Assembly: GCA_965603825.1 (NCBI GenBank)
Contig: CBFDEM010000033.1
Coordinates: 62,001-126,000, forward strand
DNA length: 64,000 bases
Origin: Blepharisma stoltei ATCC 30299
Lineage: Eukaryota; Protista; Ciliophora
Direction of reading: 5' to 3'
The number at the start of each line of letters is the position of its first letter. Positions within the stretch are counted from its first letter, which is position 1. The translations under genes and the position numbers were made by a program. Of the stretch, positions 31,051 through 36,984 are shown piece after piece. The notes below the pieces were generated by a model that saw only the letters and a program-made list of their open reading frames with translations, did not search any database and was not told the origin of the DNA.

Positions 31051-32664
31051 ATGGAGAGTAATCAGCCCGACCAAGGCGAAGAGATGGAAATGGTTATGGA
31101 CATGGTCGGATTCGGTGGTCCAGAAGAGGAAGCTCCAGTTATGTCCTTTAACATGTTAGATCCTGGAGGCGGAGAAGAAGAAGTCCCAGTCCGAAAATCC
31201 CCATATCAATTCGATCTATTTGTGATCGGTGGTGGATCAGGAGGCTTATCATGTGCCAAGGAAGCTGCCACATTAGGCGCAAAAGTAGCACTGGCTGACT
31301 TTGTGCCACCTACACCAATCGGCACTACTTGGGGACTAGGAGGGACATGCGTGAATGTTGGTTGTATCCCAAAAAAGCTTATGCATTTTGCCGGAATCTT
31401 TGGAGACTACCAAGGCGACCAAAGAGAATGCGGATGGGAACTGCCAACAAATGTTCCTCATAACTGGGAAAGAATGGTAGCTAATGTACAAAAACACATA
31501 CAAGTACTCAATTGGGGATACCGAGTCCAATTAATTGATAAAGAAATTACTTATTTCAATCATTATGCAAGCTTTGTAGATAGTCACACAGTAGCACTGC
31601 ATGATAAAACAGGGAAATTCGTGAAAAACGTCACAAGTGAAAATTTTGTTGTAGCGGTAGGATTGCGACCTTCTTATGGAGGGTACCCTGGTGCAGAAGA
31701 ATGCTGCTTTACAAGCGATGATTTGTTTTCAATGAAGAGTGTGCGTGATAACATTCTTTGTATCGGAGCATCCTATATCAGCTTAGAGTGCGCCGGATTT
31801 TTGCATTCGTTAGGAAAACATGTCACTATTATGGTCAGGTCTATTTTGCTTAGAGGGTTTGACCAAGAGGTCGCTGAAAAAATAGGCAGCTTCATGGAAG
31901 GCTTAGGCATGGTCTTCATAAAAGGTGCAGTCCCTATCCAATTTTCCAAGACTGAAGATGGGAAAGTAAGGGTAGAATACGAACAAAATGGAGAACAAAA
32001 AGTCGAAATTTATGGAGCAGTCTTTTTAGCAATTGGCCGTATCGCACTTACAAAGGGAATTAAGCCCGAAAATGCAGGAATAGTTATAAACCCCAGAAAT
32101 AACAAAATCATTGTAGATGAAGCAGATAGGTCAAGTGTACCTAATATTTTTTCTATAGGTGACGTATCAGATGGAAGACCTGAGCTTACCCCGTCTGCAA
32201 TTCAAGCAGGAAGCTATTTAGCCAAAAGGCTTTTTGGAGGTTCTACACATATAATGGACTATGTAAACGTCCCTACAACAGTTTTCACACCAATTGAGTA
32301 TGGCTGCTGTGGACTTAGTGAAGAGAAAGCTATCGAAATTTATGGAGACGAAAACGTAGAAGTATACCATTCAATGTTCAAGCCCCTGGAGTGGAATTAT
32401 TTAGAGTCAAGAGAAGGGAAATATTGCTACGGCAAAATAGTGACAAACAAGCTTGAAAATGAAAAAGTTATAGGACTACACTATTTAGGACCTAACGCAG
32501 GAGAAGTTTTACAAGGCTTCGCAGCTGCTATGAAATGTGGACTTACAAAAGAAATCCTTGACCAAACAGTTGGCATTCATCCAACCTGTGCAGAAGAACT
32601 GACAAAAATAGACGTCACCAAGCGGTCAGGAAGAACTGCCGCAAAGACCGGATGCTGAGGCTAG
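31051..32664 (+). CDS. TXNRD: High-Mr selenoprotein thioredoxin reductase, C-terminus Gly-Cys-Sec-Gly
   Basis: GGGSGG, GGTCVNVGCIPKK, GASYISLEC and GIHPT.AE. Ends GGA TGC TGA GGC TAG (32650-32664), with a SECIS immediately downstream. Confidence 0.95.
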
Positions 32665-32682
32665 ATCAAAAGATTGATCACA

Positions 32683-32740
32683 AAAAAGCATGTGACGACA
32701 TTTTTCAAACCTCATAGAGGAATTAATGTCTGAGCTTTTT
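32683..32740 (+). promoter_or_regulatory. Eukaryotic SECIS element, type II
   Basis: Helix I AAAAAG/CTTTTT. Core GTGA (32692-32695) facing TGAG (32731-32734). Helix II GACATT/AATGTC. Unpaired AAA at 32707-32709. Apical mini-stem CCTC-ATA-GAGG. Confidence 0.88.
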
Positions 32741-32764
32741 ATAATAATAAATCAATTTTAATAA

Positions 32765-33481
32765 ATGTCGAAAACTAAGTTATATTCACAGCTTAATGGG
32801 TATGCAAGTATCATGCAGACTTTAAAAGAACTGGAAACTGATGGGCACTATGACGCAATTTTCAGCTGCTTGTCTAAAGTATATGAAAATAAGCCAAGTA
32901 GCCAGAAAGAAAGCTTTAAAGAAAACTTAAAGGTGATCATTGAAAACATGATTAACGTCATCTGGAGCCAGTCCATAGAGCTGACGACCGCAAACAGCTT
33001 GAACTCACCTTTTACATCTCCTTATAACTCCTACGAAAAGCTAGAACAGCCAAAACTAGCAACCATTGACCTGAATAATTCCCCGACAGCTGAAAAGAAA
33101 CCTATAAAAATTTCCTCTTATAAGCCAATGAGTTCAGGTGAATATGATCTAGGCAAATACAGGCTCTCATACGCGAATTTAAAAAAAAAGAAAAACGAAA
33201 GCAGCATTTTCAGCTCACTGAAAGGGGAAGATTTAGCCTTGCTTTCAGATTTTTCTTATCCATCAGGCGCAGCCACATTTAATAGAGAAAGAAGAAGGCT
33301 AAATGAGATTAGAGAAATCAGCCCTGGCCCTGGGTCTTATGAAACTGACCCAGAATATTTAAGAAAAAAATCCCCTAAAGCTGTTATCCCCCACGGTGGC
33401 AAAAGAATTGATTTTGCTAAAGCAGACACCCCTGGGCCTCTTGACTATTACCCTCTAAGACACTATTTATCCAAATATTAG
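32765..33481 (+). CDS. Protein with PGPG.Y (SHIPPO/ODF3-like) motifs
   Basis: ISPGPGSY and TPGPLDY motifs, typical of microtubule-associated ciliary proteins. Confidence 0.65.
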   Translation: MSKTKLYSQLNGYASIMQTLKELETDGHYDAIFSCLSKVYENKPSSQKESFKENLKVIIENMINVIWSQSIELTTANSLNSPFTSPYNSYEKLEQPKLATIDLNNSPTAEKKPIKISSYKPMSSGEYDLGKYRLSYANLKKKKNESSIFSSLKGEDLALLSDFSYPSGAATFNRERRRLNEIREISPGPGSYETDPEYLRKKSPKAVIPHGGKRIDFAKADTPGPLDYYPLRHYLSKY

Positions 33482-33498
33482 CATAATTAATTTCTATA

Positions 33499-34968
33499 AT
33501 GAAAATTCTAATTGTTAATGGATTCGGTACAAGTGTCCGTTCTTTTGGGTATTTCAGTGAGTTTGAAACCACCATAAAAGACGTAAAAAATATATAGGGG
33601 TTTATATTGTGCAGTGAAAATTATTCCTCTCTGAAATTCATAACCAAAGACAAGCGTGATTTATGTGACTTTATTTACCATCCTGAGCTAGGTTTTGATA
33701 ATCATCAAGCAATTTCAAATTTTGACTCTTTATCGCTTATTTTTATAGGGATTGAAGCTGATATTAGGCCATGAGAAGCCAAATGTAAACAAGTTTTAGC
33801 ACTTTTAAGCCTTATAAGGAAAACCAATAAACCATGTTTTTTAGAAGGAATGGGCGCTGCTTGTTTTGCCTATACTCTAGCGACAGAGCCTATATGACAA
33901 AATGATAGAGAAAGCACTATAATAAACAGATCAGGCAGCCCGCTAAAGTATATAGAAGAAGTCAACGTTGACAGCTTTTCAGCTTATAAAAATAAACAAT
34001 GGGTGCTTGATAATATCACAGGAGATATCTATGAAGCTTGCCTTGTAAATGATAATCAGGGAGAAAAAAAGCTGAGAAGCATTGTAAATTCTGGGATGAA
34101 ATTAAATAAAAAACTCCACAAAATGGTTAACGCTAGAAACTTGACACTAAATAATTTATATGATGAAAACCCAGACTCTGAAAAAATTTTGAAGTGTAAA
34201 ATAACTTATGAAGGAAAATTGCATTGGCTTGCTAAAAGATTAAGCGTAGGGTATATATAGAGATATGAGTTTTCTGTTTTATATAAAAATAATTGGGATT
34301 TATATGAAGATCTGCAAATTGGGCAAGAAAATAAGCTTGAAATTATTGGGAAAGCAGGGAAAATCCCACTAATTGTGGCCAAGAAAAATGTTTCTGGGGT
34401 GCTATTTTATGTATTAAAAGACTACCCAGAGACTGTGCAGATTTTGTTTTCGTTTATAGAGAAATTTGTAAAAAAAGAAAGCCAGTTTTTGCAGGTACAA
34501 AATGTGCTGTTTCAAAAGCCGGCATTGATGAACCCGAAGTTTTTCCTTGGGCATAATCCAATAAAACTAAATAAAAACCAGTACTTAGACTCAAGAGCCC
34601 GGCCAGTTTTTCCTAAGCAAATCCCATTTTTAGAGAAGTCACATAATATTTTAAGAATTTTAAGAGATAGAATTAATTTTTATACTGAAGACCCCATAAA
34701 AGATAGAAACGACAAAACACTAGAAACAGAAACCGAAAAAGAAAAGAAAAAAATAAAAATCATAGCAAAACGATACAATTCAGTCTCAAGGCTAGAGTCC
34801 AGGAATTTCAGGCCCAGCACGCACTCGCTAACTAAAGATGGAAAATCAGAAAAATGGGTGCAATTTGTAAAAATCCCTAAAAATCGGTCATTTACGATTG
34901 AAAAAGTGCAGTCTCCTCCTAAGCACTCATATCATATAAAGCTCAATGCAACATTTTCGCATTCTTAA
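33499..34968 (+). CDS. Hypothetical protein, about 479 aa with two 15-nt introns; possible degenerate class I glutamine amidotransferase-like fold
   Basis: ATG 33499 (MKILIVNGF). The frame stays open after removing introns 33583-33597 and 34246-34260 and reading TGA as Trp. The fold call is tentative. Confidence 0.65.
33583..33597 (+). other. 15-nt spliceosomal intron
   Basis: GTAAAAAATATATAG. Removal deletes an in-frame TAG and keeps the frame. Confidence 0.8.
34246..34260 (+). other. 15-nt spliceosomal intron
   Basis: GTAGGGTATATATAG. Removal deletes an in-frame TAG. Confidence 0.8.
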
Positions 34969-34987
34969 TTTGTGTAATTATGTCATT

Positions 34988-36613
34988 TTATATAGGATTT
35001 AGCATACTCGGCCTAAAAACTTGTTGCCGCAAGTATCTTTCAGCTTGATTTAAATATGCAGCTGAATTCGGCTTGTTTTTTCTTTCTCTTGTCAATGGTT
35101 TTAACCTTTGTCGGTAAACGTTTCCCAAAAATGCTTTTTCAGCACTTCTTGTAGGCTGTCTTTTTGCTTTATCGAGTTCTCCACAGACCAGAAGATTCAT
35201 GGTCCTTTCTTCTTCAAAATAAGGCATATAAACAAATGATAATTCGCTAGGAAAAATCCTTTCAAAATCCCCTAATCTTTGTAGCTCATTATTAGTTTCT
35301 TTTAATACATAAATTTCTTCTTGAGACAGCTCAAATTGAGTATTCGCTGAAATTGTTGAAGAATTCCAGGCAGGCTTCCTTACTGGCTTACTTTTTTTTG
35401 CGTTTTTTTGCTTCGCTGGGATTCCTACTAAATTAAAAAGATCTGCTATAAGCTTTCCTTTAATTCGCAAATCTAAAGGAGAGTCTGTATTAAGAGAGGG
35501 AGAAAGGTTGACTTCTAATAGCCAGGGTGTATAAGAATCGTCAATTAAAATATCAAAACCAAGCAGCTCAAAACAGTTTTGCCGATACGGGACAAACATT
35601 TTCATGCTTGCATAGTTTTTTGATTCGTTAGAAATTATGGTTTTTACCACAATATCTTTGATTTTGCTTCAGATTAAGCTGAAATCTTGGTTATGGGATT
35701 TAAAATATTCCCTTAGAGCCGTAAGGGTTCATTTGTGACCTTGTCCATCTTGGTCTACACTTACAAAGTTCGGGGAAAATTTATTGACTGAATAATTAGT
35801 TAGGTGGACAAATCGGTTATCTATTTGGCCTCTTCTGTATTTTTCAGTAGCAAACCTGACGAGCCCTTCTTTGTATATGTATATTCGCAAAGGGTCGAGA
35901 CTTGTGACGGCGACGTAAATTCTTAAATCAAATTTCAGCTCATTGATTAATAAAGGATTATCAATATACCGGCAAGCCACATAACTTTGTCCAGAAGGTA
36001 GCTCAGCTGGCTTATTCGTCAAATAAATTCCTTTCCCTTGTGATTTAGCTGACGGCTTTATAATCCACATAACCCCAGGGTCCTCCAGCATCTGCTGCTC
36101 CAACGCATAAGTTTCATTAGGCAGCACATAGGTTTCAGGGATAAACCCAAACTGGTCAATTCCATGCAGAGCCTGCATTTTTGCGATATTTTTAAATAAG
36201 CAGTCTTTTTTGGTAATTTCAAAGCTCCGAGGAAAATGATTGATTTTCTGCCACCTGGCTAAGCCTGTATATACATTGCTGCGCATATTTTTGTTACCTC
36301 AGAGGATTCTTCATTCAGATTTGTGCTCTCTGAGGCCGTTTTCTTCGCAGGTTCTGCGAATAAGAGAAACGTCTCCCATACATTTGTAGTAGTAGCCAGG
36401 AGTTGTAGCGGTAAAACGCTTACGAGGACCGGTGAAAGGAGTAAATAGAAGATATTTGCCATTTATGGTAGGAAGATGCAGGATTTGTTGGGCTTCGGAG
36501 GAGGAAGAGTCATTTTCTTTGTTTTCTGGAGGCTTTGAGTAGAGATTTAGGAGGTTTTGATGCATTTTGGGGAAAACCATAAGGTCAAACTGAAATGGGA
36601 CGTTAATTGACAT
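34988..36613 (-). CDS. Tubulin polyglutamylase (TTLL4/5-like), 541 aa
   Basis: QKINHFP....T.KD.L, WI.KP, KFDLRIYV, GLVRFATE.Y, HLTNYSVNK, CFELLGFDILID and PWLLEVNLSPSL. ORFs are joined by TGA at conserved Trp sites. Confidence 0.93.
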
Positions 36614-36984
36614 TTTTATAAAGCTTTATAGTTATAGCTTACTTTAAATTTTTCATATTTATGCTTTTCTGAGGGTTTTCTATCTTAGAAATAACACCAA
36701 ATAAAGCTTACGATAAAAAATTGTGATTTATTTATAAACAATATTATGTAAATTAATTTTTTGCTTAATTTTCCCAAATAATTTTTAATTTTTATGAAAG
36801 AAGATTTAGGGCCACATCAAAGACTCCTCTTAAAATTTGTTCGCCAATTTTGAAAATGTATATGAAACTGACTTAATTCCTATAATTCCTCTGTTGATTC
36901 TCTAATCAAATCACAAAAAATATTAATTATGAAACCCTCCCTATCCACATATTTGTTTGCCTATATGTTGGTGAATTTTCTAAA

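Follow-up and report, generated by a model that had tools for sequence, protein, structure and literature searches.

UGA can mean Trp, stop and selenocysteine (Sec) in Condylostoma magnum and in Parduczia sp., both ciliates, and thioredoxin reductase (TrxR) was given as an example (Swart et al., 2016, Cell; PMC4967479). The TrxR alignment in Fig. S2E of that article includes an orthologue from Blepharisma japonicum MMETSP1395, and the article leaves the Blepharisma case and the structure of its Sec insertion sequence (SECIS) unspelled. In Euplotes crassus, the SECIS and the position of the UGA choose between Cys and Sec in TR1 and TR2, as shown by 75Se labelling (Turanov 2013, NAR; PMC3737529), a report that cites earlier work on the Cys/Sec use of UGA in Euplotes (Turanov et al., 2009, Science). 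A dual Trp/Sec role has also been documented in ciliates and a dinoflagellate (mBio 2025; PMC12153298). The Trp/Sec duality with TrxR as its example has thus been known since 2016, with experimental precedent in Euplotes. The present analysis concerns the TrxR gene of Blepharisma stoltei ATCC 30299, found in a window of 64,000 nucleotides (contig CBFDEM010000033.1, positions 62,001 to 126,000; hereafter contig 33:62001-126000), and draws on the whole 41.46-Mb assembly of 64 contigs. The macronuclear genome normally reads UGA as Trp and UAA and UAG as stops. In TrxR, the penultimate UGA is very probably recoded to a predicted Sec, giving a Gly-Cys-Sec-Gly tail. A sequence-only reading of the window had pointed to this dual-meaning UGA; the observation was confirmed and its interpretation found partial support.

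The TrxR gene and its penultimate UGA

The gene and its last codons lie as follows (window positions).

31051..32664, + strand: coding sequence of a high-Mr (animal-type) TrxR, 537 sense codons plus TAG, intron-less as judged from its translation
32656..32658, + strand: UGA at the Sec position of the G-C-U-G redox tail, the next-to-last codon
32662..32664, + strand: UAG stop codon

The reading frame ends in GGA (32650) TGC TGA (32656-58) GGC TAG (32662-64), exactly as first described, and the TGA at the Sec position is the only one in frame. The protein passes the NCBIfam TGR/TrxR selenoprotein model TIGR01438 with 651.1 bits (cut-off, 475.85) and contains the Pyr_redox_2, Pyr_redox and Pyr_redox_dim domains. 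The closest match among solved structures is rat TrxR1 (1H6V, E 5e-175), in an alignment that reaches the ...GC preceding the rat Sec-Gly, in agreement with the earlier view that GCUG is the redox tail of animal-type TrxR. The N-terminal redox centre is GGTCVNVGC and the tail is KTGC-TGA-G-stop, in the form GGN TGY TGA GGN. The high-Mr TrxR gene is single in the genome; the next paralogues are 27-38% identical, and their matches end before the C-terminal tail. The closest protein (97% identity) shares a 90%-identity cluster with B. japonicum MMETSP1395 P0272 and with the public record of the window gene. That record, the NCBI/UniRef protein P0271 (537 aa), equals the window translation and ends in ...TGCWG, so the Sec codon has been annotated as Trp. 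The gene is real and expressed, and the contigs that support its expression presumably derive from RNA.

The meaning of UGA elsewhere in this genome is best seen in a neighbouring gene.

34988..36625, - strand: TTLL gene with four in-frame TGA codons, 2.3 kb downstream of TrxR, evidence that UGA is Trp

With the TGA codons entered as X in the BLAST query, codons 109, 299, 319 and 105 of TTLL align with W in 106/127, 133/142, 70/138 and 37/125 homologues, respectively, and the TGG codons of the gene align with homologues in like manner. Taking TGA as sense gives longer open reading frames (ORFs) throughout the window, where all 35 long ORFs stop at TAA or TAG. A syntenic relative whose TrxR is 76% identical (L059) has TGA at one TTLL Trp site where the window has TGG, and TGA is found in both at another site. 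Among the relatives, UGA as Trp was shown for L059; those of 59-71% identity are known from 4.5-kb loci.

In L059, a Logan contig of 33.6 kb, the order of genes 3' of TrxR is kept when compared with window positions 31051-36625: three small + strand ORFs are followed by TTLL on the - strand. Its TTLL and Fe-SOD genes were broken into fragments by a standard-code gene caller.

Eleven orthologous TrxR genes of 59-97% identity were compared with the window gene at their 3' ends, and all twelve genes end in GGN TGY TGA GGN TAR. Homologues were called as ending in ...GC in 120 of 120 cases among the matches listed. At an ordinary Trp codon, relatives would be expected to show TGG as well as TGA, as is the case in TTLL; at this codon TGA is instead retained in 12/12 genes, which indicates Sec and not Trp. 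It is extremely unlikely that this UGA is read as Trp, with an enzyme ending in GCWG and a downstream hairpin that is incidental or an unrelated structure of the 3' untranslated region (3'UTR). Such a reading has the default of the genome and the GCWG end of the public protein P0271 in its favour; however, TGG would then be expected in some orthologues, as at the TTLL site (naive P = 5e-7 for twelve TGA, the lineages not being independent), and the UGA falls where a conserved GCUG tail has its Sec.

The five Trp codons of TrxR are all TGG, as had been counted, although this carries no signal: TGA makes up 29% of Trp codons in the window, which gives P = 0.17 for five TGG out of five. The idea that selenoprotein genes avoid TGA as Trp was set aside on the same figure; pooling three genes, with 7 TGG and 0 TGA, gives about 0.08 (0.7^7).

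The SECIS element and the end of the mRNA

The region that follows the stop codon contains these features.

32683..32740, + strand: SECIS element of form-2 shape, from a covariance model match and covariation
32683-89 with 32734-40, + strand: SECIS helix 1
32690-96, + strand: 5' internal loop AUGUGAC of the SECIS, opposite 3' UGA at 32731-33
32697-702 with 32725-30, + strand: SECIS helix 2
32707-09, + strand: apical AAA of the SECIS, 11 nt after the core UGA
32710-20, + strand: mini-stem CCUC/GAGG of 4 bp, by energy prediction alone
32665..32765, + strand: TrxR 3'UTR of 101 nt, with a poly(A) site near 32762-32765 and an AAUAAA hexamer at 32746-51
32664..32679, + strand: spacer hairpin GAUCAA/UUGAUC between stop and SECIS (z = -2.1), a weak lead of putative function

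Judged by its pattern of substitutions, the hairpin is a genuine, covarying SECIS of the K-turn type, with a GUGA ... GA core and an apical AAA, not a canonical AUGA element. It begins at 32683, 18 nt past the stop as previously noted, and the core UGA follows the Sec UGA after an interval of 34 nt, in line with the approximately 33 nt of the sequence-only reading, which had already found the core closer than in mammals, where the minimum is 51-111 nt. The same reading had called the element a canonical type II SECIS; the form-2 shape stands, whereas the core is GUGA in place of AUGA and the Rfam models do not match it. A K-turn core, (A/G)UGA opposite GA between two helices, is present in its G variant, with GUGA on the 5' strand and the opposing GA both invariant in 14/14 aligned elements. 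A hairpin of the same architecture follows every orthologue except the transcript contig L035, which ends 28 nt past the stop. The shared plan consists of helix 1, NN-GUGA-N opposite N-GA, helix 2, and an apical AAA that is present in every orthologue. At 11 nt from the core, the AAA of the window element falls within the span of about 10-13 nt expected of a eukaryotic SECIS.

A covariance model (R1) was built from four distant orthologues, excluding the window and the Blepharisma-type relatives L034 and L059. Its only match in the 64-kb window is 32682-32742, with 31.9 bits and E 2e-5, and it also recovers SECIS elements in two further selenoprotein genes of B. stoltei, an HMG-box/SelW-like gene and a glutathione peroxidase (GPx) gene. 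MAFFT alone put the 3' arms of the hairpins out of register, and a model-guided alignment was used in its place. Over 14 elements, 93.7% of the pair cells hold standard pairs, and changes on both sides occur in 16/16 pairs. The true structure reaches a covariation score of 0.664, vs 0.07-0.16 with partners slid by 1-3 columns, and 0/500 shuffles score as high. Such covariation argues against an incidental hairpin behind a Trp codon. A second model (R2), with which 150 of ~33,000 genome-wide candidates were scored, found the TrxR element and, weakly, that of the HMG-box/SelW-like gene; given this selection, the result is no census of the selenoproteome. The Rfam model SECIS_1 gave, over the whole genome, a single weak match, in or beside a protein phosphatase-like reading frame, which was rejected. 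The Rfam SECIS models overlook the GUGA-core elements of this clade.

The distance from the Sec UGA to the SECIS core, first base to first base, is 37 nt in the window and 37-59 nt over all orthologues. For mammals, a minimum of 51-111 nt has been given, and the TrxR of Condylostoma and Parduczia have shorter distances (PMC4967479). Since all orthologues read share the short spacing, it characterises the clade and is no adaptation of Blepharisma alone.

Of interest is also a relative whose TrxR is 71% identical (L038), which carries a gene for a 102-aa protein with a glutaredoxin domain (L038:3202-3510) just 3' of TrxR. The gene ends in TGC-TGA-GGN-TAG and is followed by the same GGCC hairpin and by its own SECIS (L038:3542-3594, 66 bits). 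It resembles a free-standing glutaredoxin bearing a TrxR-type Sec tail module.

The end of the mRNA was located by gene-sized contigs, all ending at 32765, that came from three runs of this organism and from a single run of a relative with 93.5% identity. One contig has a loose A8 tail at this position, and separate contigs of the next gene begin at 32769-32779. The 3'UTR therefore extends over 32665-32765, with the whole hairpin (to 32740) inside it. Polyadenylation near 32762-32765 falls downstream of the hairpin and not upstream, the latter being an outcome that the sequence-only reading had held to speak against Sec. Comparison of the window with the B. japonicum-type transcript contig L034 gave 3/101 differences in the 3'UTR vs 16.4% at third codon positions (P = 2e-5), and the sole change within a SECIS helix is A-U to G-U. 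Judging from these rates, the TrxR 3'UTR is under purifying selection.

The spacer hairpin is identical in B. japonicum, and in L059, the closest outgroup (76% identity), only three of the six pairs are intact. The idea that it is a conserved element was rejected: a hairpin can form at this place in most orthologues, but with weak z-scores, and it is half-broken in L059, so it is kept as a lead only.

The next ORF (32765-33481) has its first ATG at 32765, which is also the TrxR poly(A) site, and its protein has no Pfam match. Given that the contigs of this gene begin at 32769-32779, its translation may in truth begin at the in-frame ATG at 32813.

Several points weigh against recoding to Sec and should be set beside this evidence. 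The Rfam SECIS models give no match in the window at the gathering score, nor in 400 nt at E<=10, as would be expected if the codon were simply Trp. The fold z-score of the single hairpin sequence is only about -1.7 to -2.2. Because the alignment behind the covariation figures was fitted to the model, the counts lean towards pairing, although the margin remains large. The spacing between UGA and SECIS is under the mammalian minimum, and most of the orthologues are metagenome or Logan contigs. Finally, the label of the sequencing runs reads "RNA? (a guess)", and it is from the gene-sized contigs and the A tail that they are deduced to be RNA. Recoding to Sec nevertheless remains very probable.

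It has also to be considered that UGA close to the 3' end of an mRNA might act mostly as a stop through eRF1, with a main product truncated at ...GC and Sec inserted in a minority of events. Weak recognition of UGA by B. japonicum eRF1 in vitro, as cited in a preprint on Blepharisma (bioRxiv 10.1101/2023.10.09.561518), would agree with this, as would the depletion of UGA 25-30 codons before stops in B. stoltei (bioRxiv 10.1101/2023.10.09.561518). In the window, 0/48 other TGA codons lie within 26 codons of a stop, with ~3.0 expected (P = 0.048). However, the Gly codon and the in-frame TAR directly after the UGA are kept in all orthologues, and the 3'UTR and SECIS are strongly constrained. It is also general knowledge that mammalian TrxR without Sec-Gly is inactive towards thioredoxin. 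Predominant termination is therefore very unlikely. The eRF1 data, the UGA depletion and the fact that the TrxR UGA is the sole one of 49 TGA codons lying <=26 codons from a stop indicate that termination may still compete at codon -2.

Decoders of UGA and the selenocysteine machinery

The genome contains six identical tRNA-Trp(CCA) genes, in which the 27-43 pair is an A27/C43 mismatch, leaving a 4-bp anticodon stem. A tRNA-Trp(CCA) with a 4-bp stem is the UGA decoder described in the 2023 preprint (bioRxiv 10.1101/2023.10.09.561518). A pattern scan of the genome, of limited sensitivity, turned up a tRNA-like gene with an oversized loop but no ordinary tRNA whose anticodon is UCA. The near-cognate tRNA-Trp(CCA) is likely the sense competitor of Sec-tRNA. 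The sequence-only reading had Sec-tRNA competing with a Trp-inserting tRNA instead of a release factor; the six tRNA-Trp(CCA) genes fit the first part of this proposal, and the second part goes too far, as eRF1 may still compete.

A family of tRNA-like genes was also observed, with a common acceptor stem UCAGAG(A/G), sound D and T arms, and abnormal anticodon arms. One of these genes (contig 33:56559-56630, - strand; L058:1060-1131) lies 5.4 kb before the window and has an 8-nt loop with UCCA. Others are present on contig 42 (L090:1489-1563 and 1631-1702), where the loop holds UUCAG. The "tRNA-like molecule with possible UCA anticodon" mentioned in the 2023 preprint may correspond to the copy on contig 42.

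Judged by gene content, the Sec pathway is complete, comprising tRNA-Sec(UCA), PSTK, SepSecS, SPS, eEFSec and SBP2.

Contig 30:34444-34529: tRNA-Sec(UCA), 75.6 bits, called SeC by ARAGORN
Contig 40: SepSecS, 423 bits
Contig 13 (L007:1453-2517): selenophosphate synthetase (SelD/SPS), 214-215 bits, with Cys at the Sec/Cys site
Contig 14: eEFSec, E 1.7e-132 to human eEFSec 5IZK
Contig 53: SBP2, short (306 aa), L7Ae domain matching human SECISBP2 with E 1.2e-20
Contig 5: PSTK, divergent, full-length match to archaeal PSTK with E 2e-8, best NCBIfam model TIGR03574

Each of the components that the sequence-only reading had proposed to look for (tRNA-Sec, EFSec, SBP2, SepSecS and a UGA-reading tRNA-Trp) was therefore found in the genome. 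PSTK scores under the NCBIfam cut-offs, and the SBP2 match is confined to the L7Ae domain. The tRNA-Sec of B. stoltei has been shown in the 2023 preprint (bioRxiv 10.1101/2023.10.09.561518).

The selenophosphate synthetase has the motif GCSCKVPQ, with Cys where animal SPS2 has Sec. An SPS of the Cys type makes the Sec pathway independent of its own product.

Two further selenoprotein genes of B. stoltei were found. One, on contig 35 (~719,466-720,250; L046:1549-2295, - strand), encodes an HMG-box protein whose fusion partner is a SelW/SelH-like domain bearing the motif CGS-UGA-G (CGSU), and is followed by a GUGA-core SECIS ~10 nt past its stop. The other is a GPx gene on contig 62 (~663,039-663,362; L054), whose catalytic residue is encoded by TGA (VNVACE-UGA-GLT) and whose stop is directly followed by a GUGA-core SECIS. 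It is the one of ~8 GPx genes with TGA at the catalytic position; the others have no TGA inside the GPx-domain match and hence no Sec there. If the TrxR UGA were read as Trp, the full Sec machinery and the UGA-containing GPx and SelW-like genes would be purposeless.

A working scheme for Sec insertion can be proposed from these components. SBP2 would bind the K-turn core of the SECIS and recruit eEFSec-GTP-Sec-tRNA(Sec), so that Sec-tRNA, whose UCA anticodon is fully cognate, would be brought to the A site at the TrxR UGA. There it would outcompete the near-cognate 4-bp-stem tRNA-Trp(CCA), which must tolerate a C-A wobble mismatch, as well as an eRF1 that possibly reads UGA weakly. Elsewhere UGA would be read as Trp, with Sec-tRNA unused, because mRNAs without a SECIS would not recruit eEFSec. 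Failure of Sec insertion would give either a GCWG enzyme with Trp or a truncation by two residues, both of which should lack thioredoxin-reducing activity. When the UGA occupies the A site, most of the 16-nt spacer hairpin (32664-79) would lie within the mRNA channel, and the SECIS just outside this channel. The sequence-only reading had held that the choice of Sec over Trp implies a mechanism of its own. This step was not upheld, since the SECIS, SBP2 and eEFSec with a cognate UCA tRNA suffice in principle and the duality had already been published.

A more speculative possibility, which we consider doubtful, is that the whole 101-nt 3'UTR might form a compact module for C-terminal Sec insertion, whose geometry would limit eEFSec to the UGA immediately upstream and whose spacer hairpin would serve as a kind of Sec redefinition element. 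The parts of such a module would be the spacer hairpin, starting at the last base of the stop, the SECIS, ~25 nt beyond the UGA, and, another ~25 nt on, the poly(A) site. Short reach, and not the codon itself, would then set Sec apart from Trp, and also from residual eRF1 activity, in ciliates with UGA as Trp.

Comparison with described systems

The remaining yield of this locus, beyond the published duality, includes an annotation error, in that the public protein ending in GCWG should read GCUG, and a spacing of 37-59 nt between UGA and SECIS that is kept across relatives, far under the mammalian minimum. TrxR offers a clean natural case of one codon with two amino-acid meanings in one cell, in which the competitor of Sec-tRNA would be mainly a near-cognate sense tRNA, beyond a release factor alone. 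Since Blepharisma is culturable and has a finished genome, it could serve for measuring the partitioning of a defined UGA among Sec, Trp and stop.

The closest systems are the TrxR of Condylostoma and Parduczia, which share with Blepharisma a penultimate Sec UGA, the use of UGA as Trp and a SECIS well under the 51-111 nt of mammals. In those ciliates UGA is also a stop ("triality"), whereas Blepharisma has UAA and UAG as dedicated stops, and its UGA is otherwise seen as Trp only. The B. japonicum orthologue aligned by Swart et al. is 97% identical to the window protein.

Euplotes likewise has a ciliate TrxR with Sec at a C-terminal position and uses UGA for a standard amino acid elsewhere. The competitor in Euplotes is a cognate tRNA-Cys(UCA) inserting Cys, in contrast to the near-cognate tRNA-Trp(CCA) that inserts Trp in Blepharisma. 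The distance from stop to SECIS core is 124-138 nt in Euplotes and ~28 nt in Blepharisma, and the Euplotes TR genes contain UGA codons for Cys, whereas the Blepharisma TrxR has no UGA for Trp.

Outside the ciliates, Blastocrithidia also reads UGA as Trp through a tRNA-Trp(CCA) with a 4-bp stem and as Sec at SECIS-directed sites, for instance in SelTryp (PMC12153298). It differs in being a trypanosomatid with other selenoprotein families and in having both meanings of UGA within one mRNA (PMC12153298). Mammalian TXNRD1 (rat 1H6V, human 2J3N) is ~50-56% identical to the Blepharisma TrxR and has in common with it the CVNVGC site, the HPTCAE motif and the GCUG tail, and its SECIS confines Sec insertion to the C-terminal region (PMC3737529). 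The mammalian element, in contrast to that of Blepharisma, has an AUGA core, lies ~220 nt past the stop and has eRF1 as its sole competitor.

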